This document shows, in pieces, positions 14,934-64,000 of a stretch of 64,000 nt of DNA (position 1 is the stretch's first letter; every line of letters begins with the position of its first letter). The notes below the pieces were generated by a model. It was not told the DNA's origin. It saw nothing but the letters and a program-made list of their open reading frames with translations, and did no database searches. Origin of the DNA: Oopsacas minuta. Taxonomy: Eukaryota; Animalia; Porifera. The position numbers and the translations under genes were made by a program. The DNA is taken from contig JAKMXF010000166.1 in assembly GCA_024704765.1 (NCBI GenBank), positions 304,699 to 368,698 of the forward strand, given 5' to 3'.

Positions 14934-17900
14934 ATGAAATTTATACTTTCAGTTTATCTCCTCAGCTCTGTGATGGTTTCGCCAAAGATAATTTTCTCAT
15001 TAGTTTTATTCTCAATTTGTTTGTACTCTGTGAAATGTCAACTCGATCTTGACACGAATACCCCCGGGACTAATACCTCACTAATTTATCTCTATATCAA
15101 TTCAGACTCAACTCTACGGCTCTTCCCATCCGTATCTCTCTCTATACCAGATTTCAGACCTAATACAGCTACTGTTACTGTGTCAACTCCAACAATAAGT
15201 AGCAACTTTCCATGCTTCATGGAAATTAACTCTCTCTCCTGTAAATCAGCTAATTTATCTTCATCAAGTGATATATCTATAGAAAGTGCTATAACATTCC
15301 TACAGAGCTTATACTACCGGAATACTGCTGCAATAGAGAACAGAATCGTGGATGTAGAGGTAGTTGTTAGCTACCAGAATAATAATGAGGATAGAGCATT
15401 AAATACTCTTACAGAAACTGCTAGCTTATTAGAAACGAGAGATACACCAGTTATTTCTTTCAAAGATGGGTACGAGTATGCCCCCGTGTATCGCCATAAA
15501 TTCAGACCTGTCTTCTTCCTTGATGGAACTAACTTCACCATCTCATCTGCAGGAGGGCTCTACACTTCTCTCCTTGTATGTGTGTTCACACAATCTGAAC
15601 TGGAGGCTATATCTGTAAATAATGATCATCCTCTTGTCGACTCTCCTATCACGATTAATGAAATTGATCGTGTCTGCTCTCGACTGAACTTCTCTCCAAT
15701 CAATGATACGACTCTACTGGAAGTATTTTCTGTATTCAGTTATACAGAAAAGACTGACATGATTGATAACTACAATGATAGAGTTATCAGCATTTCAGTT
15801 GATGCTGGGTTTAACATTGGTTATCCGCTACTATTTAATATAACATACTACATGGCTATAATACCAACTCCTATATATGTTGAAACTCTTCCAGTGGTGT
15901 ATTATGACGATGTAGCAGAGTTATATGTTGCTAGCTTGTCATCTGTGAGAATGAGTGACGTCATGAATATAACTAGACAATCTCCAACAGATCTCAACCC
16001 GATCACTTCACTTCTCCTACAATCAAATTCCTCTCATGTTGCTAAGGTTACTCTATGGAATGATCAGCAATGTTCCAGCACCTGGTTAAGTCATCCAGTA
16101 TACAAATTCGATTTTTGTTCAGATCAACAGTTCTTCTTCGACTTGGAATTAACCACTCTCTTCCTTCTCAAATTCGGTGTAAAAGTAGAAACAATTACAG
16201 TTGACGGTAAAGAACTGAAGATATACTCTACTGAAAATAAGCCGGCTTATGGATTCATTACACTTATCGGGAGTGAGACCCAATCTCCAGATGCTAATCA
16301 CTTCTCTGTGTGGTTCAAGAATGCTCCTGGTGAATTGGGAGGGTGTCCCCTTGAGATAACCAATGGTCTTGTAGTTGACTACCAAATCTGCCTGACAGGG
16401 TCAGAAGATAACATTGAATTTTGGTACTCCGGACTAGCACCTGATCACCATGAGGTTAGAGTGACTTATCCAACTCAAGGAGCGTTCCGCCTCGACGATT
16501 GGAATTTCGTATCCGTATCTGTTACAAATATTTCTGTATATCTTTTGCTGAATGAAATCGAATTGGCTCCAAGTGAGTTTTATTGGTTTGATGAATTAGG
16601 AGAAGATTTCTATACTCAGATACCAGTACACCTATACAGTACTAGTCGAGATGATGCTACTGAAATTTATATTCTCGGAAAAGACCGTGGATTCATTGGA
16701 GAAGTTACTGGTGTTATTGTGGATCAGTTCTTCATTACGACAGGCGAAGCTCATTGCATGTTTTCGTGTATTGAAGGTTTTTATATGAACGAGACTATCA
16801 TTGGTATTTTACAACAGAAAGGATTACAGATTACATTTGTTAGAGAGTCTTTTGAAGTGACAGGGAATATGAGTATTATTGATATTAACTACATACTACA
16901 GAACCTGTATTATCTTACGCCAAATGACAGCTCCACTACATACAGATTAATCGCTGCTAGTGCTTCTGATGATATGTTTTATTCTACAGGAGTTACACGT
17001 ATTTCCGGAAGGTGTAGTGATTGCTTCGATCATTCTCACTGTTATGCTACTGAACACTTAAGTATGTGTCTATGTGAGAGGGGATACTTTGATGCAAGTA
17101 TTGATGGAGATATGTCAGTGTGTAAGCACCCCATGGATTGTACCTATTTGAATGGAGGATGTAGTGAATTAGAACAGTGTATACAGATTGATGATGAAGT
17201 AAGGGAGTGTGTTGACGCCTGTGATTCTTTTCCCTGTCTTAACAATGGTGCCTGTAGTATTGTTAATGTAACACATTATGAATGTGCTTGTCCTGGTGAG
17301 TTCTACGGGGTTGATTGTGAATGTAGGAATAGTTGTTTAGTACAGGACTGCTCACCTGGTGTATGTCTAGACTTTTGTAACGGTTCTTACATTTGTTTGA
17401 CTAAATCTTCTTCTGTTATTCCTACGATGAGTTCTACATTCCCACCTGCTACGTCAAGCTCCTTGTTGTTCACTACTTCTCAGGCTGTAACATCTATGTT
17501 TTCTAGCTCACTCATATCTGAATCTACTTCTTTACAGGAGTCTTCTCTAGTACAAACTTCTGTATTAGCTACTTCTTCGCTTCAGCCTTCTAGCTCAAAT
17601 ATAGAATCTTCTCCCTCCGTTACTAGCAGTCTTAAAGAAAGCTCTACTTCTTCTTTTGTTATTACGTCATCTATGGCTGTTGTATCTAGTACTGTCGTTT
17701 CTACCACTCCACCAGTATCATCTACTGTTAGTGATGTTATGACGTCATCACAAGTTGTTTCATCTACTGTTATAGATGTAACCTCATCCGATTCAGTGAT
17801 ACCTACGTCATCACAGATACCTTTTAGTTCTACAGCTGACATACTGATGTCATCACAGAGACTTTCTAGTTCTACAGCCGATATACTGACGTCATCACTA

Positions 17901-44747: not shown

Positions 44748-45578
44748 TTGTGTATATACATAAATACAGTCAATCTGAAGCATCATATATTGATTCACTT
44801 TGTTCATTCCAATTGAAAATTATTTGTTAACTCGCGTATGTATTTCTTTAATATACTTTGTGAGTATAGTTGGTAGATTGTTTTGGTAATTTGAATAATA
44901 TTTTGAATTTGATAATGATGAACTCATTATTTTGATCACTGTAATCTAATGAGATTATATTATGATTGACTTCATTACGAATTTGTTTATTGTACTATTT
45001 TATACAAGCCAGGATACTTTCTAGTCACTGAGGTCCTAAATAAAAGTTCTATTTACTCTACATTTATTGGAAATGAGGAAATGAAGTGATGCCCACCGTG
45101 AGGACCAGAGATATATGGATGAGTCCGTGCCTTGTACGATTGTACATTCCGTAATGCACTGACTCTGCAATATATTGTTGTAGTTTTCAATTAGTTTATG
45201 TATGTATGATGTATATTCTATTTGGCTGTAATCAACAAATAATACAAATGCGAACTTTTGAAGAAGAAACAAGCCTTCTTTATTGATGCTGCCTTTTGTA
45301 TATTGAACTGATGACAATCTCTCTGATAGCAGTGCTTTGATCTAATAATTATTTCTATTACGCACTTCGTTCACTGAGTTGTCATATCACTCTACTTTGT
45401 TGCTGAGAATATTTGTAAATATGTTCACAACTATCATGTTTGTCGAAGAAATGTTTAGTGAATGTGATAGCTATTGGAAAAGAAATTGGGGTCCCAATCT
45501 CTGGGCCTTTCTCCAATCCCGGGATTGAATTAACAATTCTATCATCCTATAAATATGTCTACGAAATAAATAAAATAT

Positions 45579-45756
45579 AACCTCGTTAATACAAACACCA
45601 ACGGAGGGTCAAAATTTGTTCGCTTTATCCTGAGTTTGTATTAACCGGAGTAAATCCAATTGAATAACCATTATAGGGCCCTGATATTGTGTAAATATTT
45701 GTTCGTCTTATCCCGAAATTCGTATTAACCGTGTTTGTATTAACCAAGTTCCACTG
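45579..45756. mobile_element. Tigger/pogo-like MITE at the outer edge of the palindrome (mirror about 62099-62260)
   Basis: AACCTCGTTAATACAAACAC versus GTGTTTGTATTAACCAAGTTCCACTG; the left TIR has lost its CAGTGG end. Confidence 0.65.
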
Positions 45757-46939
45757 TGTAACGGAAAAGCATTAAAGTAATAATATTTATCTCTGATTAA
45801 TGTTTTAGTGATATTAATATACTAATCGTGATTATTTCTCTCATTGTATCGAAAAAAACAAAGAGTATTGATAGATTCATTATTAAGTTTATGACTCTAA
45901 CCTCTTGAGAATTTAGTTCAAGACTTGTATAACAAATTGAATAAACTGATACAGAGGTAAGCAGCTGGTGAAAATACTCGTCCTGCTTCTACTCATTGCA
46001 TTAATATCTTAGCAAGAGATCCTGGGATTGGGAACCCTAATTAGAAATGATTCCACACTACTTGTTAAGCCAAAAATCATACTTTTAATAGAAATCTCTG
46101 ATGAGATAAACAATTATATTGCACGTGAGGAGGAAATAGAAAGATTAGTATAGATTTAGGCTACACAGCAATCTACATATGTATATCCCTTTCTATATGG
46201 AGGTGTAATTGAAATTTATAAGAAACATTCCCTCTGTCCTATCAATTGTTAGTCTCATCTCTCACTGAAAAATAGGAATTAAATCGATGGATTTTGTAAC
46301 TTGAGAGTTGAGTATGAATGAATGTGAATACATTTCTAATAGAACCATAATATTATGTTCTTAATCAGATATAAGTAAGGATTATTGTGAATTGTATTTG
46401 CTTTACTAAAACTTATTCAAATCTTCACATAAATAAACTACAGGTAAGTTGGTTCTATGCCTTGGTGTCTTTCCGACACCTTATATAAAGTTAAGAGGGA
46501 TTACTTTTATGTAAATCAAATTTCGTTAAAAGATGATGAATATCCATTGTAATTGCAATTCAAATGCATGATAAAGCTAATTATTCACCTCAATAGATCT
46601 GGTAGCTGTGTACGTATGTTATGTTACATGAATCGATTTGTCATCATATTCAATCTTCATACGTAATAACCAATATGCAACACTTGATGGTATCTATGAG
46701 TACACTGAGGATCATGATGTATACGGACGTGGGAAGGTTCATATAATTTCACATATTGTGAGTTTGTGTTCTCCCAGATACAAGATATGTCCATAAACTG
46801 ATGTATCTTCTAGATACTTATGTGTCCATGCTACCTACTCCTTGCAATCAATATTCCTACGTGCCAGGCACTTGGTTTTGGTGGGCATTGCTTGCCCCTT
46901 ACCAAAGTTATCGTTTCCACTTCAACCTCTAGGAGGAAC

Positions 46940-47490
46940 ACTGTCAAGGGACCTGGTTTAGTCTGAGGGTCAAAAACCGTTTTGTACAGGAACGTCATAT
47001 TGGCCTACCTAAAATTATGCTCATAGTCATCTGCGATTGAAGATGTTTGTTCGAATTATCACCTCCGTATCGAACCATTATTTCCTCAATAACTTATCTG
47101 CAGTAACCAATCCAATAATATCTAGGTAATCACATATACCGGAAGGAGTCCTGATTAAATCCTACCATGTTATGTCCCGTAATATTCCCGACCTCATTCT
47201 CATTTACAAGGACACCGTTTCCGGTATTATTCATCTTAAATAGGACCCTATCACACCCAAATACCAATATATCCGAGTCCTGGCTGATGACTGCATGTGC
47301 TAGACCCCTCTTATCCATATAGACCGACAGCGCGTCCGCTTCACAAGGCGCCACTTCACACTGAATTCCTTCCTTTGCTCAGGTGTGTTGATAGGATTCA
47401 TCCACCACACTTATGGATTTTACCTCTGAACACGCCCAGGGCTGAATCAATATATTATTTTGACACCATTTCTTATTCTATCAAGTACAA
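46940..47490 (-). pseudogene. EXO1: Exonuclease 1 pseudogene fragment (left-arm copy)
   Basis: Mirror image of 60365-60915. Confidence 0.75.
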
Positions 47491-47571
47491 AAACACTCTA
47501 AGTCTGTTATATACAAGAGTATATGACTAATATATTATGAAAAATATATCTACAAGTTATAATGCTGGTAA

Positions 47572-48822
47572 CTATTTTATATTAATTTGAAGAGTTATGC
47601 TGTCTTCTTTACAATCTTTATCTTCTAATATTTCAGTCTTTGAAATTAATAAAGGACGCCAAAAACCTTCATTTCTCACCTCACTAGGTCTGAGTAGTGT
47701 ATTCATAATTAGTATTACTGTTAATGTGATTGAGAAGAATAAACGTATATTTGTATCTGATAGGCCAGTGTAGTTTATCATCGTAAGCTCCTTTCATATT
47801 ATAAATCAATACATGTACTTTACCTGTATTCCACCGATCCCATAGAATAATCCCCTGACACTTGTATAAACCTACATAGAATGGATCACTGTAAGTATAT
47901 TCTCTGTTTTCTATCTTCTATTTAACACTTTTAATCTTCCATTCCAATTGTCCTGTAGATAGAGGTAGAGCCGTAAAATATCAAGTTTATCTTCCAGTAG
48001 TTTATTATCTTTAGATGTTTCAATTTGTTTCTGATTGACTATAAGTACCAGCTGTATTAGTATAGCTATACCCATGATAACTAGTGCTGATATCACCCAT
48101 ATACTCCTCGTCCTAGAAGTATTCCATCTATCCAAATTGCTTATTTCAAATTCCTTCATATCCATTTTCTCTCTCAGCTGATTTAATTCACATAGCAATA
48201 ATTTCTGATGACTAATCATTTTCTTAGTTATATGTGTGTCCAGGTCCTTTCTTGCAATTTCAATTGTCTCACAACCCACTTCCTTATAAGGACATATAAC
48301 CACACCATCTGGATTGCCCAGACAAATTCTAGCGTGTTCTTTTGTTCTGTTAGCTTGTACTTCTTTTCTACAGTACTTGCACCTTTGATTTCGGAAGGGA
48401 CACTCTTTCTGGTGTCCCAATGTGTCACATTTTTGTAACACCTTTCCACATCCTTTCTGACATTTCATTTTCTCTTTAACACAACCATTCATGTGTTCCT
48501 CAATATTGTTCAGCTTTCCTGAACAATCACAACCTCGTATTGATGGAGGACATCTGCATTTCAGTTCCCTTACAAACTCCTCTACTTGCTCATCAACTTC
48601 CCCGCCTCTACCTTCTGTACAATTTGTACAGAATGTCTTGCCTTCAGAGATCTGTGGTTTTATGCTAATTCCATCACATTTTGAACAGAATATGAATTTC
48701 TTCATATTCTCGTGGACCTATTCCTTGAGTAGGCCTGCTCGATACCCTCCTGTCTTTTCCCTCCTATCCACGTCGATGAGAGTAGTTGTAGAGTCTGGTG
48801 TTACAGGTTCTCTCTCTGCCAT
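47572..48822 (-). pseudogene. TRAF-like pseudogene (left-arm copy)
   Basis: Mirror image of 59033-60283. Confidence 0.75.
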
Positions 48823-50160
48823 GTATTTACTCACTTGTTTACTTGTTTGTTAGTTATCACTTATCAGTTAGTTACAGTTCTGTGCTGTAATTCAATAGCT
48901 ATTACATAGGAGATTAATTTCAATAGTTACTTGTGAATATTAAACACTCTGCAAAGGTGTGAAATATGATTAAACATATGATAAACATGATCATGTGCAT
49001 ATTCCCGGCTCTAACCTTCTAGAATCTAGAAGGTGTAAAAATATAATTTACGTAATCATAATATACGATTATCGACACAAACTTGTGCTAATGTGGCATA
49101 AGAATATCCTAATTGGGTTATTGGGATAGTTCAAGTCGTGGGCTACATTGTCGCTTTTATGAGCCAACCGATTAGAATTATAGTGCTCGAGTTATTTACC
49201 AAATTGTGTCACACAACGACACTATATATAAAGCCAAATCCGTCAATTAGAAACTTTTTTCATTAACATAGAATGCAGTTTTGTGTGTTGCAGTATCAAC
49301 TTTATACTATACCCTACTATTTTACACATTTATGCTCAGTTGTAAAAGTCTACAATCTGAGATTTCTGGACAGAATTGGAAATATCTAATTGTTACCGGG
49401 AATTATTCAGTGTAGGAATGGTGCATTAAATGTTATCATACCAGATAACTGTTAATGAATCCGTTTTTAGCTTAACTACAATATCCCACATTCATATTAC
49501 ACAATTCATGATAATTACGCAAATAATACACGAAATTATGTGAAATTAAGTAGTCCTTAGCCATGAGTAATTCTGGATACAATCGATTTCAACATTTCCA
49601 TCTGTTCTCAAGTGATGTTCTATCGTATTCAATAGGTATTACGAGTGAGTGAAAATTTAAGGTTCGACCACTCCAGAAATGTCAAGGGGGAAATTTCCGA
49701 GTGCATGATATTCAAAAAAAAAAATCAAGCATAAAGATTTAAATGGTGGTTCCATAGCAATAATGGGGTAAGAATAAAGTGTTAATGATCCTATTAATAA
49801 GAATGTTTCATGTTGTAAATGGGAGGGCAAGAACGGACAAATGGGGGGCATTGCCTCCCCCTCAGTTACACCACTGGTCATCTATAAGAAAGCACTTCAC
49901 AACATTTTCAATGAAACCTAAATATTACACACCTCAAAAAATACTTATCGTATGATTGGAAGTAATTATAGAATTAGTGCTACAAAATACACTACTGGCC
50001 TAGCATACAAATGAGTAGTAAATAAAGACTGGAGAATAGATATGAACAGAAGTAAATACAACAACAGACGCCTGACTAAATAGTATACCAAGGAAACATA
50101 AAGACATTATCCATACAATGAACTCAACAATCAGCTGATGATACTGCCATTCTAGTCTGG

Positions 50161-51933
50161 TCAGATGTCGAAGTTCGTTTCAACCTGTAGAGCTACATTA
50201 GCATGTTTCAAGGTTTCAACTTCTGATTCGGGAAGTGGGTTTCCTATTATGGGTGCTACCTCTTTCATTCTGTCTAATTCAGCAATTGTAGGATTATATT
50301 CTGGAACATATTTTGTATATAACCCTCTGAAATGATAGAGAAGGAACAAGATTACCACGATTAACAGGACTAATAATATGATTAGAACGAAAATTATCAC
50401 AGCAAACACCACTATTATATATTCAGTCTCACCAAAGTTCGAGATTTGAGGGCTTATGGTGATGAATTCGCAGTCGCTATTGTTTGAAGTGGAGATGTTG
50501 TATCCCTCAAAACAGGAACAATAAAATGAACCAATTGTGTTGGTACAATTCTGTGAACAACCTCCATTGTTTACCCCACACTCATTCACATCATTGCAGA
50601 AAGTTTCATTGAGATTAACGAATCCCTCGCCACAGTCACATGTGTATGAACCAAGTGTGTTAATACAGTTACCTTGACATGTAATACTACTGTCTTCACA
50701 CTCATCTATGTCTGAGCATACGAAACTACTATTATTGTATAAGGCACGTTCTGGTGGATAAGTACAATTACAACCAGTCTCTGTATCAACTCTATACCAA
50801 TTATAACCCTGACAGACTATTGAATCGTTGAAACACGGATAATCGGGGTTAACACATCCCACATAGAGGCTGGGATCATCGACTTGGAGGCCTGGGTTTC
50901 CTGGACAAAAATTGTATGAGTCTAGTTCTATTTCGACATTATATACGTCTTCTAGTATGTAGATCCATTCTGTTTCACAGGTGCAATCGAATGCAATGTA
51001 TTCAAAAGACAAGTAACTTAATTGTGGAAATTGTTCAAATATTTCTGGACTCAAAAGCGTTGGATTATAATTGTCGAGGTGGATTTGTGTAATGCTTTTG
51101 GCTAGTGTAAGGGTTGATAGTGGAAATGATGGATTAAGCCCCAAGCGAACATCTTCTAATGCATCCAAATCAATGAAAGTGTATTCTCCAACCGTAGTTA
51201 TGTCATTATTGGAAAGATAAATTGTATCCAATTCATGTAAACCATCAAATGTACAGTCATATAACTCGTGGATTTCATTGTTATTTATACTCAATCGTCT
51301 TAACTTGTATGTGCCTTTAAATGAATCTGACATTAATTTTGTTATGCCTCCGGATTCCCAATATAACTTCTCCAATTTATCCAGCCCCCCGACAAGAGTT
51401 CGATCAATGACACGACTTGACTCTTCTCTTATAAACGAGCTTTCGACTTCAATTTCTATGAGATGTATATTTTGTGAGAAAAATGGCATCAAATTCGATC
51501 CTAACGTAGTAGCTTCGTAGTACTCCAAGTTCGGGAAATACGTAAAGAAGTCGTTATGGTTAATAAACACCTCATAGTAGTAAAAAATCAATTTAGTCAC
51601 GTTATAATTTATCGTAGAAGTTTCAACAAAAATGGGTTCATAGAATTGATTTTCTATTTCCAAAATTTCTATGTTACTAGGAATATTTATATTCAACGTA
51701 GTACCAGCACCTCCCACCAGTATTTCAATATCAAGATAATGGTAACTTCCCTGAGAACATTCATAGATTTTTTCCTGTATTGCTTCTGTATCATGCCCGC
51801 GAACTTCACAGTCTAGTTCATCACCGTCCTCAAAGCATGTCACTATTGTATTCCCACAATTACCACTGACTAAAACAGCTGAATGTCTGAAAACGAGAAT
51901 ACATAATAATAGTACCTTGCTTATTGATTTCAT
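50161..51933 (-). CDS. LRR + calcium-binding EGF type I membrane protein (left-arm copy)
   Basis: Signal peptide, LRRs (LRRLSINNNEIHEL..TFDGLHELDTIYLSNNDI), LRR-CT (AFDCTCETEW), two cbEGF (DIDECED; DVNECGVNNGGCSQNCTNTIGSFYCSC), TM helix, cytoplasmic tail. Confidence 0.9.
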   Translation of the reverse strand: MKSISKVLLLCILVFRHSAVLVSGNCGNTIVTCFEDGDELDCEVRGHDTEAIQEKIYECSQGSYHYLDIEILVGGAGTTLNINIPSNIEILEIENQFYEPIFVETSTINYNVTKLIFYYYEVFINHNDFFTYFPNLEYYEATTLGSNLMPFFSQNIHLIEIEVESSFIREESSRVIDRTLVGGLDKLEKLYWESGGITKLMSDSFKGTYKLRRLSINNNEIHELYDCTFDGLHELDTIYLSNNDITTVGEYTFIDLDALEDVRLGLNPSFPLSTLTLAKSITQIHLDNYNPTLLSPEIFEQFPQLSYLSFEYIAFDCTCETEWIYILEDVYNVEIELDSYNFCPGNPGLQVDDPSLYVGCVNPDYPCFNDSIVCQGYNWYRVDTETGCNCTYPPERALYNNSSFVCSDIDECEDSSITCQGNCINTLGSYTCDCGEGFVNLNETFCNDVNECGVNNGGCSQNCTNTIGSFYCSCFEGYNISTSNNSDCEFITISPQISNFGETEYIIVVFAVIIFVLIILLVLLIVVILFLLYHFRGLYTKYVPEYNPTIAELDRMKEVAPIIGNPLPESEVETLKHANVALQVETNFDI

Positions 51934-53114
51934 TGTTAGCTTGTTTGTTAAGAATATTATTGTTATAATTAACTATGGGGTACTTCTCTTATTTATATGT
52001 CAGACTAGACAAGTTTTCTATAAATTTATTCAGTGCTATTGTACAGCTTCCTCGAACATTTGCAATGTTATCACGCACCGCACTTTCACCTTGGGAGGTT
52101 CTTCTACTGTAGTGTTTGTTAAGAAGAAATATTTTGTGAAACGTGACCTATATTGCAAGAAACTTACAGTAGGTAAGTTCGTCATTTATTTCATTACGTG
52201 TCATATTTCTATTTGTTTAATGGACACTAAATTTAGTAATCCACAAGAAAGTGTAGAATTGCAATTACGTACATTTGAAATTGATAATTTGGTAAATCTG
52301 TTGAAATGGTTATTTTATTCACAAATAGAGGATTTCATCTTTCCTACTTACAATCTTTCTCAATTTAAGATACATCATTAAATTTGTGATACAATAATAT
52401 TATTCCATGCAAAGTAGGAATATTCCTACTTGGCGTGAGAATTTATGCATTGTGAAATATTAACGGGTGTTATTTCCAATTTATTTCAACAATTACAATT
52501 ATCGAATCACTTCCTGATGGCATCTCTGACACCAAGGGAAATTTCTTCACCTAAATCCAAATAGTAAAGTACACGCATGAATACAACGTATTTTGATAGA
52601 CTAATTCGATAAAAATGATTCTCACCATGGCAATATCCCTTCAAATACACCAACCAACAACGAGGGGCAAGCCAAGCATCCAAACAACTCCCTATAGGTA
52701 TGTGTGACATTATTCCGAGGGAAAATATCTTAATAGATAATATACATATTCCAAATTTGTTGCGCCTAGTAGGAATATTCCTATTTGCCACGAAACAATA
52801 TCATATAATGAAGTGTCATCCACAAACTACATCTATATTATTGAATCTCAATTGTTGTTTGTTTGTTTGTCTGTTGTCAAGGAAAGCATTACAATTACAT
52901 TTCAATTCTTCGAACCCAATTACAATTAATTACAATTGCACTGTATGAATATTAACTTTTAATTATGAATGCAGTAATCCAATTTAGTAGAATTATGACT
53001 TATCTTGCAAACTAAACAAATTGCGAGACTAAAGACAAATAATATACTGATCAAGAAGAATTATACTAAATTTAAGAAAGGATAATACTATATAAAATTA
53101 CTAATGATGTATTA

Positions 53115-54159
53115 CACAGGCCAACAAAACATATTTTTGTTTCTGTTGCCTAAGATTTTAGATTGAATTTAGACTATATTTGCTGTGCTGAGTTCGAAAA
53201 TGGCATCGGCTTTGCTGGATTGGCTCTTGATTTTAGTCTACATTTATGTTTATATTGTTAGTTACCTTTTTCAAATGTATATTCAATTTAATCAATAGTT
53301 TATAATTATAAGTATCTAGCATATTCCAACTCTATGGCATCGTCAGGAAGAAAATGTTCTAATGATCCTAATACGTTCTGTTACATATGTGGTGAATATA
53401 CGTTGAAAGATCAGAGAAGAAGTATCTCAGACTTCGTGCGAAAGGCATACTTTGCTTACTTTGAGGTGAAGCTTGGAGACCAAAACAGCTCTTCAATATT
53501 TGGTCAATTCAATCTGGAGAAACACAATAATCTAAGCAGGAACCTCAACCTGTCTAAAGAGTGTTCAGAAATTTTGCATCCAGGAACTAAGATAACATAT
53601 TATCGTCATAGAGAAGAAGGATTACTTCATTACTTTAGCCATCAAGAAGGCCTCGTCTTCTGCAATGACATTGGAGGACTTCTCCTGGAAATGGGAGTAC
53701 CACAATATTGGCCAGAAGGTTAGCGTCTATTCATTGATAGTTCCAAGAGAAGCTTGAAGTGCGTTTTATTGCATAATGGAAATGAATATGCATCTATTCC
53801 AATTGGACATTCAACAAATCTCGAAGAGGAGTCTGAAAATAGTAAGATGGTATTGGAAAAATTGAAATAACTTGAAACCAGTGATTGATATATGTTGATC
53901 TCCAGATGGTAAACTTTCTACTTGGCCAACAAGCTGGATACAATAAGTACTCTTGTTTTATATGTTTATGGGACAGCAGAGCCCGCAAAGATCATTGGGT
54001 AAATAAAGTGTGACCCTTAAGAACTGATCTAACAGTTGGAGGAGCAAACATTCTGTATGAGCCATTGGTTCCTAGAGAAAAAATCATTCTTCCACCCCTC
54101 CACATCAATTTGGGTTTTATGAAGCAGTTAATAAAATCTCTGGATAAAGACGGGCCCCC
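53115..54159 (+). mobile_element. 5' part of a Chapaev3-like (CMC) DNA transposon, internally deleted; its first 581 bp are mirrored at 54160-54740
   Basis: CACAGGCCAACAAAAC terminus after TTA. Transposase remnants: MASSGRKCSNDPNTFCYICGEY, RLFIDSSKRSLKCVLLHNGN, LGQQAGY, CLWDSRA, IILPPLHI.LG.MKQ. Stops and deletions present. Superfamily assignment is from recall of family motifs. Confidence 0.65.
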
Positions 54160-55921
54160 CCCATTTCCAGGAGAAGTCCTCCAATGTCATTGCAGAAGAC
54201 GAGGCCTTCTTGATGGCTAAAGTAATGAAGTAATCCTTCTTCTCTATGACGATAATATGTTATCTTAGTTCCTGGATGCAAAATTTCTGAACACTCTTTA
54301 GACAGGTTGAGGTTCCTGCTTAGATTATTGTGTTTCTCCAGATTGAATTGACCAAATATTGAAGAGCTGTTTTGGTCTCCAAGCTTCACCTCAAAGTAAG
54401 CAAAGTATGCCTTTCGCACGAAGTCTGAGATACTTCTTCTCTGATCTTTCAACGTATATTCACCACATATGTAACAGAACGTATTAGGATCATTAGAACA
54501 TTTTCTTCCTGACGATGCCATAGAGTTGGAATATGCTAGATACTTATAATTATAAACTATTGATTAAATTGAATATACATTTGAAAAAGGTAACTAACAA
54601 TATAAACATAAATGTAGACTAAAATCAAGAGCCAATCCAGCAAAGCCGATGCCATTTTCGAACTCAGCACAGCAAATATAGTCTAAATTCAATCTAAAAT
54701 CTTAGGCAACAGAAACAAAAATATGTTTTGTTGGCCTGTGTAATACATCATTAGTAATTTTATATAGTATTATCCTTTCTTAAATTTAGTATAATTCTTC
54801 TTGATCAGTATATTATTTGTCTTTAGTCTCGCAATTTGTTTAGTTTGCAAGATAAGTCATAATTCTACTAAATTGGATTACTGCATTCATAATTAAAAGT
54901 TAATATTCATACAGTGCAATTGTAATTAATTGTAATTGGGTTCGAAGAATTGAAATGTAATTGTAATGCTTTCCTTGACAACAGACAAACAAACAAACAA
55001 CAATTGAGATTCAATAATATAGATGTAGTTTGTGGATGACACTTCATTATATGATATTGTTTCGTGGCAAATAGGAATATTCCTACTAGGCGCAACAAAT
55101 TTGGAATATGTATATTATCTATTAAGATATTTTCCCTCGGAATAATGTCACACATACCTATAGGGAGTTGTTTGGATGCTTGGCTTGCCCCTCGTTGTTG
55201 GTTGGTGTATTTGAAGGGATATTGCCATGGTGAGAATCATTTTTATCGAATTAGTCTATCAAAATACGTTGTATTCATGCGTGTACTTTACTATTTGGAT
55301 TTAGGTGAAGAAATTTCCCTTGGTGTCAGAGATGCCATCAGGAAGTGATTCGATAATTGTAATTGTTGAAATAAATTGGAAATAACACCCGTTAATATTT
55401 CACAATGCATAAATTCTCACGCCAAGTAGGAATATTCCTACTTTGCATGGAATAATATTATTGTATCACAAATTTAATGATGTATCTTAAATTGAGAAAG
55501 ATTGTAAGTAGGAAAGATGAAATCCTCTATTTGTGAATAAAATAACCATTTCAACAGATTTACCAAATTATCAATTTCAAATGTACGTAATTGCAATTCT
55601 ACACTTTCTTGTGGATTACTAAATTTAGTGTCCATTAAACAAATAGAAATATGACACGTAATGAAATAAATGACGAACTTACCTACTGTAAGTTTCTTGC
55701 AATATAGGTCACGTTTCACAAAATATTTCTTCTTAACAAACACTACAGTAGAAGAACCTCCCAAGGTGAAAGTGCGGTGCGTGATAACATTGCAAATGTT
55801 CGAGGAAGCTGTACAATAGCACTGAATAAATTTATAGAAAACTTGTCTAGTCTGACATATAAATAAGAGAAGTACCCCATAGTTAATTATAACAATAATA
55901 TTCTTAACAAACAAGCTAACA

Positions 55922-57694
55922 ATGAAATCAATAAGCAAGGTACTATTATTATGTATTCTCGTTTTCAGACATTCAGCTGTTTTAGTCAGTGGTAATTGTG
56001 GGAATACAATAGTGACATGCTTTGAGGACGGTGATGAACTAGACTGTGAAGTTCGCGGGCATGATACAGAAGCAATACAGGAAAAAATCTATGAATGTTC
56101 TCAGGGAAGTTACCATTATCTTGATATTGAAATACTGGTGGGAGGTGCTGGTACTACGTTGAATATAAATATTCCTAGTAACATAGAAATTTTGGAAATA
56201 GAAAATCAATTCTATGAACCCATTTTTGTTGAAACTTCTACGATAAATTATAACGTGACTAAATTGATTTTTTACTACTATGAGGTGTTTATTAACCATA
56301 ACGACTTCTTTACGTATTTCCCGAACTTGGAGTACTACGAAGCTACTACGTTAGGATCGAATTTGATGCCATTTTTCTCACAAAATATACATCTCATAGA
56401 AATTGAAGTCGAAAGCTCGTTTATAAGAGAAGAGTCAAGTCGTGTCATTGATCGAACTCTTGTCGGGGGGCTGGATAAATTGGAGAAGTTATATTGGGAA
56501 TCCGGAGGCATAACAAAATTAATGTCAGATTCATTTAAAGGCACATACAAGTTAAGACGATTGAGTATAAATAACAATGAAATCCACGAGTTATATGACT
56601 GTACATTTGATGGTTTACATGAATTGGATACAATTTATCTTTCCAATAATGACATAACTACGGTTGGAGAATACACTTTCATTGATTTGGATGCATTAGA
56701 AGATGTTCGCTTGGGGCTTAATCCATCATTTCCACTATCAACCCTTACACTAGCCAAAAGCATTACACAAATCCACCTCGACAATTATAATCCAACGCTT
56801 TTGAGTCCAGAAATATTTGAACAATTTCCACAATTAAGTTACTTGTCTTTTGAATACATTGCATTCGATTGCACCTGTGAAACAGAATGGATCTACATAC
56901 TAGAAGACGTATATAATGTCGAAATAGAACTAGACTCATACAATTTTTGTCCAGGAAACCCAGGCCTCCAAGTCGATGATCCCAGCCTCTATGTGGGATG
57001 TGTTAACCCCGATTATCCGTGTTTCAACGATTCAATAGTCTGTCAGGGTTATAATTGGTATAGAGTTGATACAGAGACTGGTTGTAATTGTACTTATCCA
57101 CCAGAACGTGCCTTATACAATAATAGTAGTTTCGTATGCTCAGACATAGATGAGTGTGAAGACAGTAGTATTACATGTCAAGGTAACTGTATTAACACAC
57201 TTGGTTCATACACATGTGACTGTGGCGAGGGATTCGTTAATCTCAATGAAACTTTCTGCAATGATGTGAATGAGTGTGGGGTAAACAATGGAGGTTGTTC
57301 ACAGAATTGTACCAACACAATTGGTTCATTTTATTGTTCCTGTTTTGAGGGATACAACATCTCCACTTCAAACAATAGCGACTGCGAATTCATCACCATA
57401 AGCCCTCAAATCTCGAACTTTGGTGAGACTGAATATATAATAGTGGTGTTTGCTGTGATAATTTTCGTTCTAATCATATTATTAGTCCTGTTAATCGTGG
57501 TAATCTTGTTCCTTCTCTATCATTTCAGAGGGTTATATACAAAATATGTTCCAGAATATAATCCTACAATTGCTGAATTAGACAGAATGAAAGAGGTAGC
57601 ACCCATAATAGGAAACCCACTTCCCGAATCAGAAGTTGAAACCTTGAAACATGCTAATGTAGCTCTACAGGTTGAAACGAACTTCGACATCTGA
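55922..57694 (+). CDS. LRR + calcium-binding EGF type I membrane protein (right-arm copy, identical translation)
   Basis: Same 590-aa translation as 50161..51933. Confidence 0.9.
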   Translation: MKSISKVLLLCILVFRHSAVLVSGNCGNTIVTCFEDGDELDCEVRGHDTEAIQEKIYECSQGSYHYLDIEILVGGAGTTLNINIPSNIEILEIENQFYEPIFVETSTINYNVTKLIFYYYEVFINHNDFFTYFPNLEYYEATTLGSNLMPFFSQNIHLIEIEVESSFIREESSRVIDRTLVGGLDKLEKLYWESGGITKLMSDSFKGTYKLRRLSINNNEIHELYDCTFDGLHELDTIYLSNNDITTVGEYTFIDLDALEDVRLGLNPSFPLSTLTLAKSITQIHLDNYNPTLLSPEIFEQFPQLSYLSFEYIAFDCTCETEWIYILEDVYNVEIELDSYNFCPGNPGLQVDDPSLYVGCVNPDYPCFNDSIVCQGYNWYRVDTETGCNCTYPPERALYNNSSFVCSDIDECEDSSITCQGNCINTLGSYTCDCGEGFVNLNETFCNDVNECGVNNGGCSQNCTNTIGSFYCSCFEGYNISTSNNSDCEFITISPQISNFGETEYIIVVFAVIIFVLIILLVLLIVVILFLLYHFRGLYTKYVPEYNPTIAELDRMKEVAPIIGNPLPESEVETLKHANVALQVETNFDI

Positions 57695-59032
57695 CCAGAC
57701 TAGAATGGCAGTATCATCAGCTGATTGTTGAGTTCATTGTATGGATAATGTCTTTATGTTTCCTTGGTATACTATTTAGTCAGGCGTCTGTTGTTGTATT
57801 TACTTCTGTTCATATCTATTCTCCAGTCTTTATTTACTACTCATTTGTATGCTAGGCCAGTAGTGTATTTTGTAGCACTAATTCTATAATTACTTCCAAT
57901 CATACGATAAGTATTTTTTGAGGTGTGTAATATTTAGGTTTCATTGAAAATGTTGTGAAGTGCTTTCTTATAGATGACCAGTGGTGTAACTGAGGGGGAG
58001 GCAATGCCCCCCATTTGTCCGTTCTTGCCCTCCCATTTACAACATGAAACATTCTTATTAATAGGATCATTAACACTTTATTCTTACCCCATTATTGCTA
58101 TGGAACCACCATTTAAATCTTTATGCTTGATTTTTTTTTTTGAATATCATGCACTCGGAAATTTCCCCCTTGACATTTCTGGAGTGGTCGAACCTTAAAT
58201 TTTCACTCACTCGTAATACCTATTGAATACGATAGAACATCACTTGAGAACAGATGGAAATGTTGAAATCGATTGTATCCAGAATTACTCATGGCTAAGG
58301 ACTACTTAATTTCACATAATTTCGTGTATTATTTGCGTAATTATCATGAATTGTGTAATATGAATGTGGGATATTGTAGTTAAGCTAAAAACGGATTCAT
58401 TAACAGTTATCTGGTATGATAACATTTAATGCACCATTCCTACACTGAATAATTCCCGGTAACAATTAGATATTTCCAATTCTGTCCAGAAATCTCAGAT
58501 TGTAGACTTTTACAACTGAGCATAAATGTGTAAAATAGTAGGGTATAGTATAAAGTTGATACTGCAACACACAAAACTGCATTCTATGTTAATGAAAAAA
58601 GTTTCTAATTGACGGATTTGGCTTTATATATAGTGTCGTTGTGTGACACAATTTGGTAAATAACTCGAGCACTATAATTCTAATCGGTTGGCTCATAAAA
58701 GCGACAATGTAGCCCACGACTTGAACTATCCCAATAACCCAATTAGGATATTCTTATGCCACATTAGCACAAGTTTGTGTCGATAATCGTATATTATGAT
58801 TACGTAAATTATATTTTTACACCTTCTAGATTCTAGAAGGTTAGAGCCGGGAATATGCACATGATCATGTTTATCATATGTTTAATCATATTTCACACCT
58901 TTGCAGAGTGTTTAATATTCACAAGTAACTATTGAAATTAATCTCCTATGTAATAGCTATTGAATTACAGCACAGAACTGTAACTAACTGATAAGTGATA
59001 ACTAACAAACAAGTAAACAAGTGAGTAAATAC

Positions 59033-60283
59033 ATGGCAGAGAGAGAACCTGTAACACCAGACTCTACAACTACTCTCATCGACGTGGATAGGAGGGAAAA
59101 GACAGGAGGGTATCGAGCAGGCCTACTCAAGGAATAGGTCCACGAGAATATGAAGAAATTCATATTCTGTTCAAAATGTGATGGAATTAGCATAAAACCA
59201 CAGATCTCTGAAGGCAAGACATTCTGTACAAATTGTACAGAAGGTAGAGGCGGGGAAGTTGATGAGCAAGTAGAGGAGTTTGTAAGGGAACTGAAATGCA
59301 GATGTCCTCCATCAATACGAGGTTGTGATTGTTCAGGAAAGCTGAACAATATTGAGGAACACATGAATGGTTGTGTTAAAGAGAAAATGAAATGTCAGAA
59401 AGGATGTGGAAAGGTGTTACAAAAATGTGACACATTGGGACACCAGAAAGAGTGTCCCTTCCGAAATCAAAGGTGCAAGTACTGTAGAAAAGAAGTACAA
59501 GCTAACAGAACAAAAGAACACGCTAGAATTTGTCTGGGCAATCCAGATGGTGTGGTTATATGTCCTTATAAGGAAGTGGGTTGTGAGACAATTGAAATTG
59601 CAAGAAAGGACCTGGACACACATATAACTAAGAAAATGATTAGTCATCAGAAATTATTGCTATGTGAATTAAATCAGCTGAGAGAGAAAATGGATATGAA
59701 GGAATTTGAAATAAGCAATTTGGATAGATGGAATACTTCTAGGACGAGGAGTATATGGGTGATATCAGCACTAGTTATCATGGGTATAGCTATACTAATA
59801 CAGCTGGTACTTATAGTCAATCAGAAACAAATTGAAACATCTAAAGATAATAAACTACTGGAAGATAAACTTGATATTTTACGGCTCTACCTCTATCTAC
59901 AGGACAATTGGAATGGAAGATTAAAAGTGTTAAATAGAAGATAGAAAACAGAGAATATACTTACAGTGATCCATTCTATGTAGGTTTATACAAGTGTCAG
60001 GGGATTATTCTATGGGATCGGTGGAATACAGGTAAAGTACATGTATTGATTTATAATATGAAAGGAGCTTACGATGATAAACTACACTGGCCTATCAGAT
60101 ACAAATATACGTTTATTCTTCTCAATCACATTAACAGTAATACTAATTATGAATACACTACTCAGACCTAGTGAGGTGAGAAATGAAGGTTTTTGGCGTC
60201 CTTTATTAATTTCAAAGACTGAAATATTAGAAGATAAAGATTGTAAAGAAGACAGCATAACTCTTCAAATTAATATAAAATAG
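59033..60283 (+). pseudogene. TRAF-like pseudogene: RING, zinc fingers, hydrophobic helix, MATH domain
   Basis: ATG at 59033 and in-frame TAG at 59135. Zn fingers follow (CPFRNQRCKYC; CPYKEVGC). After a frameshift the MATH domain reads LEWKIKSVK*KIENREYTYSDPFYVG..MKGAYDDKLHWPIRYKYTFILLN, then a further frame gives EDSITLQINIK. Confidence 0.75.
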
Positions 60284-60364
60284 TTACCAGCATTATAACT
60301 TGTAGATATATTTTTCATAATATATTAGTCATATACTCTTGTATATAACAGACTTAGAGTGTTT

Positions 60365-60915
60365 TTGTACTTGATAGAATAAGAAATGGTGTCAAAATAA
60401 TATATTGATTCAGCCCTGGGCGTGTTCAGAGGTAAAATCCATAAGTGTGGTGGATGAATCCTATCAACACACCTGAGCAAAGGAAGGAATTCAGTGTGAA
60501 GTGGCGCCTTGTGAAGCGGACGCGCTGTCGGTCTATATGGATAAGAGGGGTCTAGCACATGCAGTCATCAGCCAGGACTCGGATATATTGGTATTTGGGT
60601 GTGATAGGGTCCTATTTAAGATGAATAATACCGGAAACGGTGTCCTTGTAAATGAGAATGAGGTCGGGAATATTACGGGACATAACATGGTAGGATTTAA
60701 TCAGGACTCCTTCCGGTATATGTGATTACCTAGATATTATTGGATTGGTTACTGCAGATAAGTTATTGAGGAAATAATGGTTCGATACGGAGGTGATAAT
60801 TCGAACAAACATCTTCAATCGCAGATGACTATGAGCATAATTTTAGGTAGGCCAATATGACGTTCCTGTACAAAACGGTTTTTGACCCTCAGACTAAACC
60901 AGGTCCCTTGACAGT
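60365..60915 (+). pseudogene. EXO1: Exonuclease 1 pseudogene fragment (right-arm copy)
   Basis: GIQCEVAPCEADA, AVISQDSDILVFGC.RVLFKM..GNG, FRYM then CDYL with CILSG deleted, DDYEHNFR*ANMTFLYKTVFDP; contains stops and deletions. Confidence 0.8.
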
Positions 60916-62704
60916 GTTCCTCCTAGAGGTTGAAGTGGAAACGATAACTTTGGTAAGGGGCAAGCAATGCCCACCAAAACCAAGTGCCTGGCACGTAGGA
61001 ATATTGATTGCAAGGAGTAGGTAGCATGGACACATAAGTATCTAGAAGATACATCAGTTTATGGACATATCTTGTATCTGGGAGAACACAAACTCACAAT
61101 ATGTGAAATTATATGAACCTTCCCACGTCCGTATACATCATGATCCTCAGTGTACTCATAGATACCATCAAGTGTTGCATATTGGTTATTACGTATGAAG
61201 ATTGAATATGATGACAAATCGATTCATGTAACATAACATACGTACACAGCTACCAGATCTATTGAGGTGAATAATTAGCTTTATCATGCATTTGAATTGC
61301 AATTACAATGGATATTCATCATCTTTTAACGAAATTTGATTTACATAAAAGTAATCCCTCTTAACTTTATATAAGGTGTCGGAAAGACACCAAGGCATAG
61401 AACCAACTTACCTGTAGTTTATTTATGTGAAGATTTGAATAAGTTTTAGTAAAGCAAATACAATTCACAATAATCCTTACTTATATCTGATTAAGAACAT
61501 AATATTATGGTTCTATTAGAAATGTATTCACATTCATTCATACTCAACTCTCAAGTTACAAAATCCATCGATTTAATTCCTATTTTTCAGTGAGAGATGA
61601 GACTAACAATTGATAGGACAGAGGGAATGTTTCTTATAAATTTCAATTACACCTCCATATAGAAAGGGATATACATATGTAGATTGCTGTGTAGCCTAAA
61701 TCTATACTAATCTTTCTATTTCCTCCTCACGTGCAATATAATTGTTTATCTCATCAGAGATTTCTATTAAAAGTATGATTTTTGGCTTAACAAGTAGTGT
61801 GGAATCATTTCTAATTAGGGTTCCCAATCCCAGGATCTCTTGCTAAGATATTAATGCAATGAGTAGAAGCAGGACGAGTATTTTCACCAGCTGCTTACCT
61901 CTGTATCAGTTTATTCAATTTGTTATACAAGTCTTGAACTAAATTCTCAAGAGGTTAGAGTCATAAACTTAATAATGAATCTATCAATACTCTTTGTTTT
62001 TTTCGATACAATGAGAGAAATAATCACGATTAGTATATTAATATCACTAAAACATTAATCAGAGATAAATATTATTACTTTAATGCTTTTCCGTTACACA
62101 GTGGAACTTGGTTAATACAAACACGGTTAATACGAATTTCGGGATAAGACGAACAAATATTTACACAATATCAGGGCCCTATAATGGTTATTCAATTGGA
62201 TTTACTCCGGTTAATACAAACTCAGGATAAAGCGAACAAATTTGACCGTCGTTGGTGTTCTATAACCTCCCAACCCATTCTCTTACAAATTAGTTTCAAT
62301 GAGCTCTATACCATTAGCGAGTGCAATAACAATCCTACACATATTCGAACCAATTTGGAAATAGCTCACTTGACTCACATCGTTTACGCATATACGTATA
62401 ATGTAATATTTTTGTATATTCTGTCAATAACTTTCCTACACTCCATTCAATATTACACTAGCTATATCCAGAGATCTCACGCTTTTTCTGTGTTCCAAAT
62501 TATAATCTCACGCCATTTTATGATTCTTTACTGTACATTTGGATGCCAAAATGCTAAATCTCACGCCTTGTGAGAAAAAATCTCATGTGTTGTTTAGACG
62601 TCAAGTTGACATCTATGTACATGTATAACAATATAAATCAATTACAAATATTTTATTCTTACAATCTAGCTAAATGTAAATAACATAATTCACTCTAGAC
62701 GTGG

Positions 62705-64000
62705 TTATTTTATGTGATAGAAAAACTCTATCAAAATACTATCTTTGACACAAATTCCTGGTTTCCCTATTAGATCCCAAGGGATGCTAGCTAATTTACA
62801 AATATTAACTGTACCCTTGAGTACATGTGAGTTCTTGTAGATGTATTGTGTTGTTTGGTGAATTTGATTCATTAGCACAATTCCTGAGTAGAAAGTATAG
62901 GTTTGCCTAGATGAGAGATTGATCTCACAAGTCAGCTCGATGTTTGGTGATTTTTTATTCTTCAGACATCTGCAAAATATGGATATCTTGTGTATTAAAT
63001 TATTTAAGGTCAATTCGTTCCCTTCTTCATTTAGATATACAAACACATTTCTGTTATTTATAACGTCATTTATTTGATCAACCATGAAGTTAAACTTTGA
63101 GGCCGATTTGATTGTTTTGTCATATTTTAAGCACGCTCCCTCGAATTTTACTTCTGTCTCTAACGAAGGTTCCACAATTTGTCTTAGTCTTTGATTATCT
63201 TTAGCTATTAAATCAAAGGTGGTTTGTATTTTTTCTATTTGTGTAGTTTTAGAATTGATCTCTTCTTTGAGAATTGAATTTTCATTATTGGTTTGTAATA
63301 TTTTATTTTGAAGGCTTTCTAGCTTCATTTCCATATGTAGCAGTCTGTTGTCATTATTGTGAGTATCTAAATGGTTTCTATATACTCTCTCACAACACCC
63401 ATACTTCTTGTAATCACATTCTAACAAAGTATTAGAACACATATCTTCTATGTGAGACTGCATGTCTTGTCTCAGTATTGTTTCTCCACACTTATTCACA
63501 CACTGTAACGGGAAATTTGTACACACTTCTAAATGGAGAGTGAGTCCACCAGCTCGGTGAGATTCTGTACAGAATTCACATTCAAGAATTCGATTGGTAC
63601 ATTGTTGAGTGATGTGTGTATTCATGTGGATCCTCTTGATGACAGCTCCACATGACAGGTGACATTCTTTGTGAAAATACTCACATGTGTCTAGATGAGC
63701 CTCTGCTGATGAAATGACATCTTCCCAGTCACATCCACGTGACTTCAAGGGACAGAAAATAATCAAACTACTTACTATCTCTCTGTTTGTTATCAAAACA
63801 TTGTATGGATTTCCTTCTGCACATACCAAGCATACGAATGTCTGAGGAGAACCTATTCCACAAGCACCTCGTGTTAATCCCTCACACTTACTGCAGATAA
63901 CTAAAGTTCTCAAGAATGAAGGAATCTCTTCCTTCAGGAGATCAGGCTTGTAGCCCAAACTATTCCCATCTTTCTCAATACACAACAGAGACTCTGTGTT
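62705..64000 (-). CDS. TRAF-like protein (RING, TRAF zinc fingers, coiled coil, divergent C-terminal domain); 5' end outside the window
   Basis: GYKPDLL..ICSKCEGL, CPLKSRGCDW, CTNRILECEFC, CDYKKYGC; the frame is open to the window edge. Confidence 0.88.
   Translation of the reverse strand, partial: NTESLLCIEKDGNSLGYKPDLLKEEIPSFLRTLVICSKCEGLTRGACGIGSPQTFVCLVCAEGNPYNVLITNREIVSSLIIFCPLKSRGCDWEDVISSAEAHLDTCEYFHKECHLSCGAVIKRIHMNTHITQQCTNRILECEFCTESHRAGGLTLHLEVCTNFPLQCVNKCGETILRQDMQSHIEDMCSNTLLECDYKKYGCCERVYRNHLDTHNNDNRLLHMEMKLESLQNKILQTNNENSILKEEINSKTTQIEKIQTTFDLIAKDNQRLRQIVEPSLETEVKFEGACLKYDKTIKSASKFNFMVDQINDVINNRNVFVYLNEEGNELTLNNLIHKISIFCRCLKNKKSPNIELTCEINLSSRQTYTFYSGIVLMNQIHQTTQYIYKNSHVLKGTVNICKLASIPWDLIGKPGICVKDSILIEFFYHIK

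Follow-up and report, generated by a model that had tools for sequence, protein, structure and literature searches.

A ~16.6-kb palindrome with identical arms bearing an LRR-EGF receptor gene in the Oopsacas minuta genome assembly, possibly a very young inverted duplication

The palindromes of ampliconic genes on mammalian sex chromosomes are kept alike by arm-to-arm gene conversion. The palindrome described here from the glass sponge Oopsacas minuta resembles them in its kilobase-scale, near-identical arms, short unique spacer and intact arm genes; however, its arms are much shorter, its inner edge is sharp, and no sign of age or orthologous palindrome was found. Inverted duplications and DUP-TRP/INV-DUP rearrangements (PMC4352052, PMC11293582), which form when break-induced or microhomology-mediated replication switches template repeatedly between inverted repeats, likewise have two junctions in cis, one lying in inverted repeats (here two MITEs) and the other having little or no homology (here at most 3 nt), with the duplicated segment inverted and the breakpoints clustered in repeats. 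DUP-TRP/INV-DUP events are triplications within duplications, whereas O. minuta has two copies with apparent loss of the intervening DNA, and the human low-copy repeats are far longer than the O. minuta MITEs (~185 bp, roughly 80% identity). Fold-back inversions and hairpin-primed palindromes, including those of yeast ODIRA (PMC10766183, PMC10766186), share the short-loop fold-back, arms derived from the same locus and possibly a short imperfect inverted match. Under ODIRA, an inverted triplication bounded at each junction by short inverted repeats is expected (PMC10766183, PMC10766186), from which the O. minuta palindrome differs, and fold-backs of the cancer type run to the chromosome end or into breakage-fusion-bridge cycles, whereas here a second junction closes the palindrome after 8.1 kb. 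The palindromes of the 2013 draft of Adineta vaga were, as is the case here, seen only in a draft scaffold-level assembly without long-range verification (PMC8494291). Those were blamed on erroneous scaffolding of phased haplotypes (PMC8494291), while in O. minuta the two arms match exactly, contain no gaps and are connected by a unique loop.

The window analyzed is a stretch of 64 kb on the 788-kb contig JAKMXF010000166.1 of the published O. minuta genome, and all positions given are those of the window. By repeat search and direct string comparison, the left arm (45612-53695) and the right arm (54160-62243) are exact reverse complements over 8,084 nt, with 0 mismatches, and enclose a spacer of 464 nt (53696-54159, + strand), so that arms of 8.1 kb each form a palindrome of ~16.6 kb in total. 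The earlier note, made by reading the sequence, had reported the same arm length, spacer length and coordinate symmetry and had proposed a full arm alignment as a check; its figures are reproduced here, and that alignment is perfect. Exact inverted arms of this length cannot have arisen by chance. Within the window, no other inverted repeat reaches 200 nt, and there is no N.

Each arm carries one intact gene, which encodes a receptor of 590 aa with LRR_8, EGF_CA and FXa_inhibition domains, a predicted signal peptide and a single transmembrane segment (residues ~505-533). The left copy (50161-51933, - strand) and the right copy (55922-57694, + strand) have the same sequence and the same 1.8 kb of upstream DNA, and since their 5' ends point to the center of the palindrome, they form a head-to-head pair. 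A TRAF-like gene lies in two frames at 47687-48717 (- strand; zf-TRAF piece at 47914-48717, MATH piece at 47687-47917, both on the - strand), with its mirror copy at 59138-60168 (+ strand). An EXO1-like XPG_I fragment of 82 aa (47133-47378, - strand; mirror copy at 60477-60722, + strand) has an intact relative on contig C44 with 80% amino acid identity and an open frame of 694 aa. Domain matches in each arm bear out the gene content given in the earlier note (an intact LRR-EGF-TM receptor present twice, TRAF and EXO1). Its description of the TRAF copies as pseudogenes holds as to their presence in both arms, split over two frames, but pseudogene status is not established, as a short intron could account for the change of frame.

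The inner junction identifies which side of the palindrome is parental. An unclassified dispersed repeat (53114-54158, + strand) has many copies in the genome at 84-89% identity and a family extent of ~1530 bp, and no Pfam domain was found in three frames. The copy at the center of the palindrome runs unbroken across 53695/53696, from the left arm into the spacer, which comprises family positions ~585-1070 and ends at the fold-back junction. Left arm and spacer therefore belong to a single uninterrupted repeat copy, which marks the left side as parental where it meets the spacer. The repeat is then cut at 54159/54160, after ~1070 of its ~1530 bp, while other copies and the family consensus extend ~460 bp past the break. 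As the right arm, the derived inverted copy, abuts the repeat at an internal repeat position, the structure represents a true fold-back around a unique loop of 464 nt. The junction itself (54152-54162, + strand) reads GGG followed by a run of eight C, the sole G/C homopolymer of at least 8 nt in the window. Microhomology is limited to 3 nt or less (CCC/GGG), and the C run is as long as the contributions of the two sides added together, a pattern nearer to a blunt join. In the repeat consensus, an imperfect 8/9 match is located 11 nt downstream (CATTTGCAG in the consensus versus CATTTCCAG at the arm start) and may represent a short inverted match. The inner boundary is razor sharp, with no degenerate zone. 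An orphan stretch of the repeat beginning at the breakpoint, as a mis-assembled remainder would leave behind, was looked for elsewhere in the assembly and not found.

The outer end of each arm falls within a copy of a high-copy, Tc1/mariner-like MITE of ~185 bp with ~26-nt TIRs, whose other copies show TA target-site duplications. In the left copy (45573-45760, + strand), perfect arm identity starts 40 nt inside the element. The mirror copy (62095-62266, - strand) matches it exactly up to 62243 and then continues into a different MITE end (62244-62266, - strand), a 23-nt remnant that carries four 1-nt deletions and zero substitutions relative to the family consensus. MITE-like similarity thus extends past the perfect arms by 17-23 nt on the right and ~40 nt on the left, and past 62266 the DNA is unique, with no arm homology beyond the MITE end. 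The claim in the earlier note of unique DNA on both sides therefore needs correcting, as the flanks are not purely unique, whereas its reasoning that two junctions are involved is correct, with both the inner (54159/54160) and the outer right (62243/62244) being new joins. The remnant is MITE-derived, and its source is not the left flank: it has the consensus bases at both of the private substitutions of the left copy. The deletion-bearing form occurs once in the genome, and a subfamily trait was rejected for that reason; per 188 bp, a natural MITE copy differs by ~20 substitutions and has 0-1 indels. No second allele or haplotig was found, with neither flank having another copy in the assembly.

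We see an even chance that the palindrome is a real and very young inverted duplication produced by replication-associated template switching. The layout of the junctions matches what a replication-based fold-back or template-switch duplication would be expected to leave: two inverted copies with a short unique spacer continuous with one arm, and a second junction back to the forward track within a MITE, where a different MITE end is followed by unique DNA. A junction formed by homology within an inverted repeat pair, combined with a second junction of the microhomology type, is the published signature of replicative inverted rearrangements (PMC4352052, PMC11293582). The sequence demonstrates the anatomy, the repeat identity of both junctions and the parental status of the left inner side; the mechanism, the order of the switches and the existence of both copies in the animal are inferred. 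In the proposed sequence of events, a fork or broken end inside the 1.53-kb dispersed repeat would have folded back onto a point 464 nt upstream with 3 nt or less of pairing, and 8.1 kb would then have been copied in reverse, including the receptor, the TRAF-like gene, the EXO1 fragment and the MITE. Exit from the reverse track would have taken place inside the MITE through pairing with a second, oppositely oriented MITE beside the present right flank, with loss of the remaining dispersed repeat and of whatever stood between the repeat and the right flank. The outcome would be two identical, divergently oriented copies of a type-I LRR-EGF membrane receptor, that is, a doubling of dosage in a receptor/TRAF neighborhood. 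The perfection of the arms carries little weight in this argument, since an artefact also gives zero differences in 8 kb and a de Bruijn assembler writes the edge of a collapsed repeat twice. Additionally, the inner junction (GGG plus C8) and the outer one (four 1-nt deletions) each show oddities of the indel type that may stem from joins lacking support and left unpolished, which speaks against a real duplication.

Alternatively, and with somewhat lower but still substantial probability, the animal may have only one copy of the segment. A chimeric or snap-back molecule would have given rise to a hairpin-type contig with a false fold-back path, and scaffolding (SPAdes scaffolder, SSPACE) or gap filling would then have used the MITE to connect this contig to the right flank; what truly remains of the dispersed repeat, together with a short downstream piece, would have disappeared among the discarded contigs. 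The assembly graph was built from Illumina data at ~186x and PacBio reads were used, but not nanopore reads; the hybrid SPAdes assembly was processed with SSPACE (-n 15), Pilon and GapFiller (-n 10), contigs shorter than 1 kb were discarded, and there was no whole-genome amplification (PMC10280926). The word "palindrome" is absent from the genome paper (PMC10280926). Such a pipeline permits merges on short overlaps and drops contigs of less than 1 kb, both junctions lie inside repeats, the arms are perfectly identical, and the inner junction coincides exactly with the C8 run. The outer remnant (consensus-like, with four 1-nt deletions, and unique in the genome) resembles a gap-fill or long-read consensus more than a natural MITE. 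There is also a precedent, as the palindromes of the first Adineta vaga assembly were gone in the chromosome-level assembly (PMC8494291). On the other hand, two independent errors are required, and chimeric reads would have to pass coverage filters at ~186x. The 15-mer at the merge point is found in 0/6 other MITE copies inspected, making an SSPACE overlap merge there improbable, and a neighboring TRAF palindrome keeps 2 mismatches, so the pipeline is not simply fabricating or flattening every inverted repeat. A missed SMRTbell adapter would not leave the 464-nt unique loop seen at the inner junction, and a palindromic k-mer self-loop does not fit it either. No scaffold gap or palindromic k-mer center was found at the junction, where there is no N and the center is a non-palindromic loop, and for lack of a palindromic center, a self-loop artefact of de Bruijn assembly, as treated in PMC9528984, was rejected. 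Two of the artefact routes raised in the earlier note, MDA chimeras and fold-back long reads (nanopore fold-back or a missed PacBio adapter), are unlikely given the published methods (no MDA was used) and the loop.

A palindrome that is old, with arms held identical by arm-to-arm gene conversion and only the outer 17-40 nt escaping it, is a distinctly unlikely reading. Identity breaks off abruptly at the outer edge, where 0/8084 differences give way to several within ~30 nt, arm-to-arm identity exceeds 99.9% (it is 100%, part of which the assembler may impose), and patchy tracts of 96-97% identity between otherwise diverged head-to-head receptor paralogs are compatible with conversion. However, the inner boundary lacks any degenerate zone, homology ends with the MITE and there is none further out, and the two outer edges share no derived state: compared with a consensus-like ancestor, the left edge has two substitutions and the right edge four deletions. 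A palindrome older than its arm identity implies would be expected to show decayed homology beyond the arms or to have an orthologous palindrome in relatives; the first was not seen at the locus, nor the second in the one relative contig compared. The nearest receptor paralog elsewhere has only 84-93% DNA identity, and the single relative contig examined, a weak test, yielded no orthologous pair. The choice framed in the earlier note, between a duplication that is recent or maintained by conversion and an artefact, was the right one, although its conversion option is now disfavored. Insertion as a unit of a giant fold-back or composite transposon is hardly credible: the arms terminate in MITE terminal inverted repeats and an exact 9-bp direct repeat, TATAACCTC, stands just outside both of them (45576-45584 and 62261-62269), but 6/9 bases of the left TATAACCTC belong to the MITE terminal repeat itself and 6 bases of the right one come from its mirrored, near self-complementary stretch (TATTAAC minus one base), so that chance is needed for only three bases, and the supposed termini are out of register by a 10-nt offset, the MITE family makes TA rather than 9-bp duplications, and the 8-kb arm content is absent elsewhere in the genome. 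The status of TATAACCTC as a target-site duplication was rejected on the grounds of this overlap, the misaligned termini and the single-locus arm content.

Inverted pairs are also found beyond this palindrome. Other head-to-head pairs of the LRR-EGF receptor family in O. minuta show partly diverged inverted homology (88-97%), a head-to-head TRAF pair with 2 mismatches in 677 nt begins 1.1 kb to the right of the palindrome, and a cofilin palindrome of 956 nt lies on the same contig. With these older receptor pairs and the two smaller palindromes (TRAF and cofilin), inverted duplication looks recurrent and real here, which lends plausibility to the fold-back or template-switch reading. The best receptor homologue outside Oopsacas (54% identity) is a single receptor gene on an ENA contig, and no shared neighbors were found around it in this one relative contig, again a weak test of synteny. 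A broader proposal, which we regard as rather doubtful, is that the palindrome is the largest and youngest case of a genome-wide process in O. minuta, in which frequent fold-back inverted duplication and subsequent arm-to-arm conversion would generate and reshape head-to-head gene pairs, with clusters of receptor and TRAF genes (of the innate-immunity type) as a main substrate and short MITEs as landing pads that close the palindromes.

If the palindrome is an artefact, 8 kb of the reference assembly are spurious, as is the second gene model, and other perfect palindromes in the O. minuta assembly would need read-level checks. If it is real, it would be a fresh gene duplication with both breakpoints intact in an early-branching animal, exposing the sequences that seeded it (a dispersed repeat and a MITE pair) and doubling an LRR-EGF surface receptor beside TRAF genes. 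Taken with the TRAF and cofilin palindromes and the older receptor pairs, it would then suggest that inverted duplication regularly contributes to gene-family change in this compact genome, and, should the genome-wide process hold true, a glass sponge would have expanded its receptor family to a large part by inverted rather than tandem duplication, as a principal route.

A search of the window for repeats recovered a palindrome at 45612-62243, whose two arms (45612-53695 and 54160-62243; 8,084 nt each, 464 nt apart) are 100% complementary, and direct string comparison found zero mismatches between them. The 8,084-bp arms, 464-bp spacer and exact symmetry described in the earlier note are thereby borne out, and the full-arm check for mismatches that it proposed has been run. 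The two copies lie in inverted orientation around a short spacer (53696-54159) continuous with the left arm, and this arrangement cannot be attributed to chance. The 64-kb window contains no N and no other inverted repeat ≥200 nt in length; a direct repeat links positions 1-300 and 628-927 (300 nt, 97% identity, 627 nt apart). Comparisons were made against the whole assembly (61.46 Mb, 365 contigs), in which the window corresponds to C166:304699-368698 (C166 being the contig that carries it).

Each exact arm contains an intact 590-aa ORF (50161-51933 on the minus strand, mirrored at 55922-57694 on the plus strand), confirming the claim of two identical, divergent copies of an LRR-EGF-TM receptor whose transcription is directed outward from the palindrome centre. 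The ORF encodes LRR_8, two calcium-binding EGF and one FXa_inhibition-type EGF domains, a signal peptide is predicted at its N-terminus, and a single transmembrane segment (about residues 505-533) is followed by a tail of ~55 residues; the predicted product is a type-I receptor-like protein. It belongs to a large glass-sponge family with more than 40 loci in the O. minuta genome, the closest paralog lying on contig C88 (81% protein identity, 84-93% DNA identity). The arms were also said to carry TRAF and EXO1 pseudogenes. This holds for EXO1, represented by an 82-aa XPG_I piece (47133-47378) of an EXO1-like gene, the likely source of which is an intact relative on contig C44 (C44:511222-511461; 694-aa open frame, 80% amino acid identity to the fragment). 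The TRAF-like gene, which shares only 25% identity with the right flank's intact TRAF gene, is divided between a zinc-finger ORF (47914-48717) and a MATH ORF (47687-47917) in another frame, a change that may reflect a frameshift or a short intron, which makes it at most a possible pseudogene. Split genes were searched piecewise, with no spliced model joined for any search. Elsewhere in the window, many housekeeping genes at 4737-36747 (ELMO, RtcB, TTL, amidohydrolase and TAF5-like WD40) are single long ORFs, consistent with an intron-poor, compact genome, and a 1,561-aa ORF (14934-19619) with no clear Pfam domain includes ~35 tandem copies of a 42-bp (14-codon) unit at 17715-19196.

The inner junction lies within a copy (53114-54158) of a dispersed repeat of ~1,530 bp with constant ends, dozens of copies of which occur at 84-94% identity (e.g., in the comparison stretches L002:1499-3030 and L003-L008); the repeat has no Pfam match, and no terminal inverted repeats were seen. 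The window's copy aligns unbroken over the boundary between left arm and spacer, and therefore the left arm and spacer are parental. It ends at family position ~1070, precisely at the start of the right arm, where other copies extend 460 bp further, so 54159/54160 is a true fold-back join, connecting sites within one repeat copy that are separated by 464 nt. This join has no more than CCC/GGG of microhomology. Where the repeat consensus has GGCCCC, the join has GGG and then eight C, and no other G/C run in the window reaches a length of 8. At 11 nt past the join the consensus reads CATTTGCAG, which agrees with the start of the right arm at eight of nine positions; we give little weight to this possible short, imperfect inverted match. 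A search of the rest of the assembly for a stray fragment of this repeat beginning at the breakpoint found none.

At its outer end, each arm terminates inside a copy of a ~185-bp element that has TA duplications and ~26-nt terminal inverted repeats beginning CAGTGG (start, CAGTGGAACCTCG) and is a Tc1/mariner-like MITE; copies occur at 45573-45760 and in stretches L011-L014, L019 and L020. Allowing up to three mismatches, the genome contains 236 matches to a 26-nt terminal motif (versus none for a control), giving at least 236 recognisable ends. The left MITE is an ordinary copy (18 substitutions and no indels relative to the consensus; normal copies have ~20 substitutions and 0-1 indels per 188 bp), and perfect arm identity begins 40 nt into it. 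On the right, identity stops at 62243 and the following 23 nt (62244-62266) are a MITE end with the consensus base at both sites privately mutated in the left copy; the outer right join (62243/62244) is therefore between the arm's MITE and another MITE end. That end has four single-base deletions and no substitutions relative to the consensus, a form with no other occurrence in the genome (versus 236 gapless ends). The sequence at the outer right junction does not copy the left flank, nor is it an element that decayed in the ordinary way; error-prone synthesis at a template switch is one possible source of the deletion cluster, and gap-fill or long-read sequence left unpolished is another. The flanks had been described as unique DNA; past the MITE they are indeed unrelated to each other, but both arm ends sit within it.

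The earlier note proposed a recent or conversion-maintained dosage duplication of the receptor, or an artefact, and is supported in part. As judged from the assembled sequence, a real, recent inverted duplication has an even chance of being correct. One join lies in an inverted repeat pair and the other has little homology, with a segment inverted and duplicated and intervening DNA lost; this layout is the published signature of replicative template-switch rearrangements (PMC4352052, PMC11293582), to which fold-back and ODIRA models are related (PMC10766183, PMC10766186). The palindrome shares both kinds of join with these rearrangements. Its anatomy is established; how it arose, and in what order the templates were switched, we infer. 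On the favoured reading, a fork or a broken end within the dispersed repeat would have folded back 464 nt, 8.1 kb would then have been copied in reverse, and synthesis would have returned to the forward track via a second, inverted MITE.

An assembly artefact is a serious but less probable rival. The published assembly, from wild adults of a single cave population, combined Illumina and Canu-corrected PacBio reads in SPAdes 3.9 (k 21-99), followed, once scaffolds <1 kb had been discarded, by SSPACE (-n 15), Pilon and GapFiller (-n 10); short-overlap merges were permitted and small contigs dropped, and the word "palindrome" does not occur in the genome paper (PMC10280926). Both junctions fall in repeats and show indel-type oddities, palindromes in draft assemblies have been retracted previously (PMC8494291), and the perfect match of the arms carries no information, since an assembler that resolves a collapsed edge writes it out twice. 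However, two independent errors would be required, neither missed-adapter reads nor palindromic-k-mer self-loops can account for the 464-nt loop, a chimeric junction should fail ~186x short-read coverage filters, and the 15-mer that an overlap merge at the join would require is absent from the other MITE copies inspected. Additionally, neither whole-genome (MDA-type) amplification nor nanopore data entered the assembly (PMC10280926). A neighbouring inverted TRAF pair retains two mismatches, so the pipeline does not flatten all inverted repeats. An old palindrome with arms kept alike by conversion is unlikely and ranks last among the three main readings, given its sharp inner edge, homology that stops with the MITE, and outer edges without a common derived state. 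Insertion of a mobile element, suggested by an exact 9-bp direct repeat (TATAACCTC) near both outer ends (45576-84 and 62261-69), is highly improbable and was rejected, since the repeat is largely the MITE's own terminal repeat (direct at left, via a near self-complementary core at right, leaving three bases to chance), the proposed ends do not line up in register, and the contents of the arms occur at one locus only in the genome.

If the palindrome is a real duplication, it has company. The right-flank TRAF gene (840-aa open frame) lies head-to-head with a second (827-aa open frame) in a pair beginning 1.1 kb right of the palindrome (63324-64000 onward; C166:368022-368698 and 369826-370502, or L021:3324-4000 and 5128-5804), inverted-identical over at least 677 nt save two C/T differences; the genes differ beyond, and the rest of the spacer reads as N in the stretch retrieved, so the arms may be longer. 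A cofilin pair on that contig, ~31 kb upstream of the window (C166:270371-273535; L025:2371-3326 and 4580-5535), has perfect 956-nt arms that end abruptly and are separated by a spacer of 1,253 nt; its boundaries carry no MITE and no dispersed repeat. Head-to-head receptor-family pairs on two further contigs (C333:76001-86000, L022; C66:771001-781000, L023) display patchy inverted homology of 88-97%, with short tracts at 96-98% in genes otherwise 72-80% alike, a pattern suggestive of gene conversion between paralogs in inverted orientation. Taken together, these cases make inverted duplication look like a recurrent process in the O. minuta genome.
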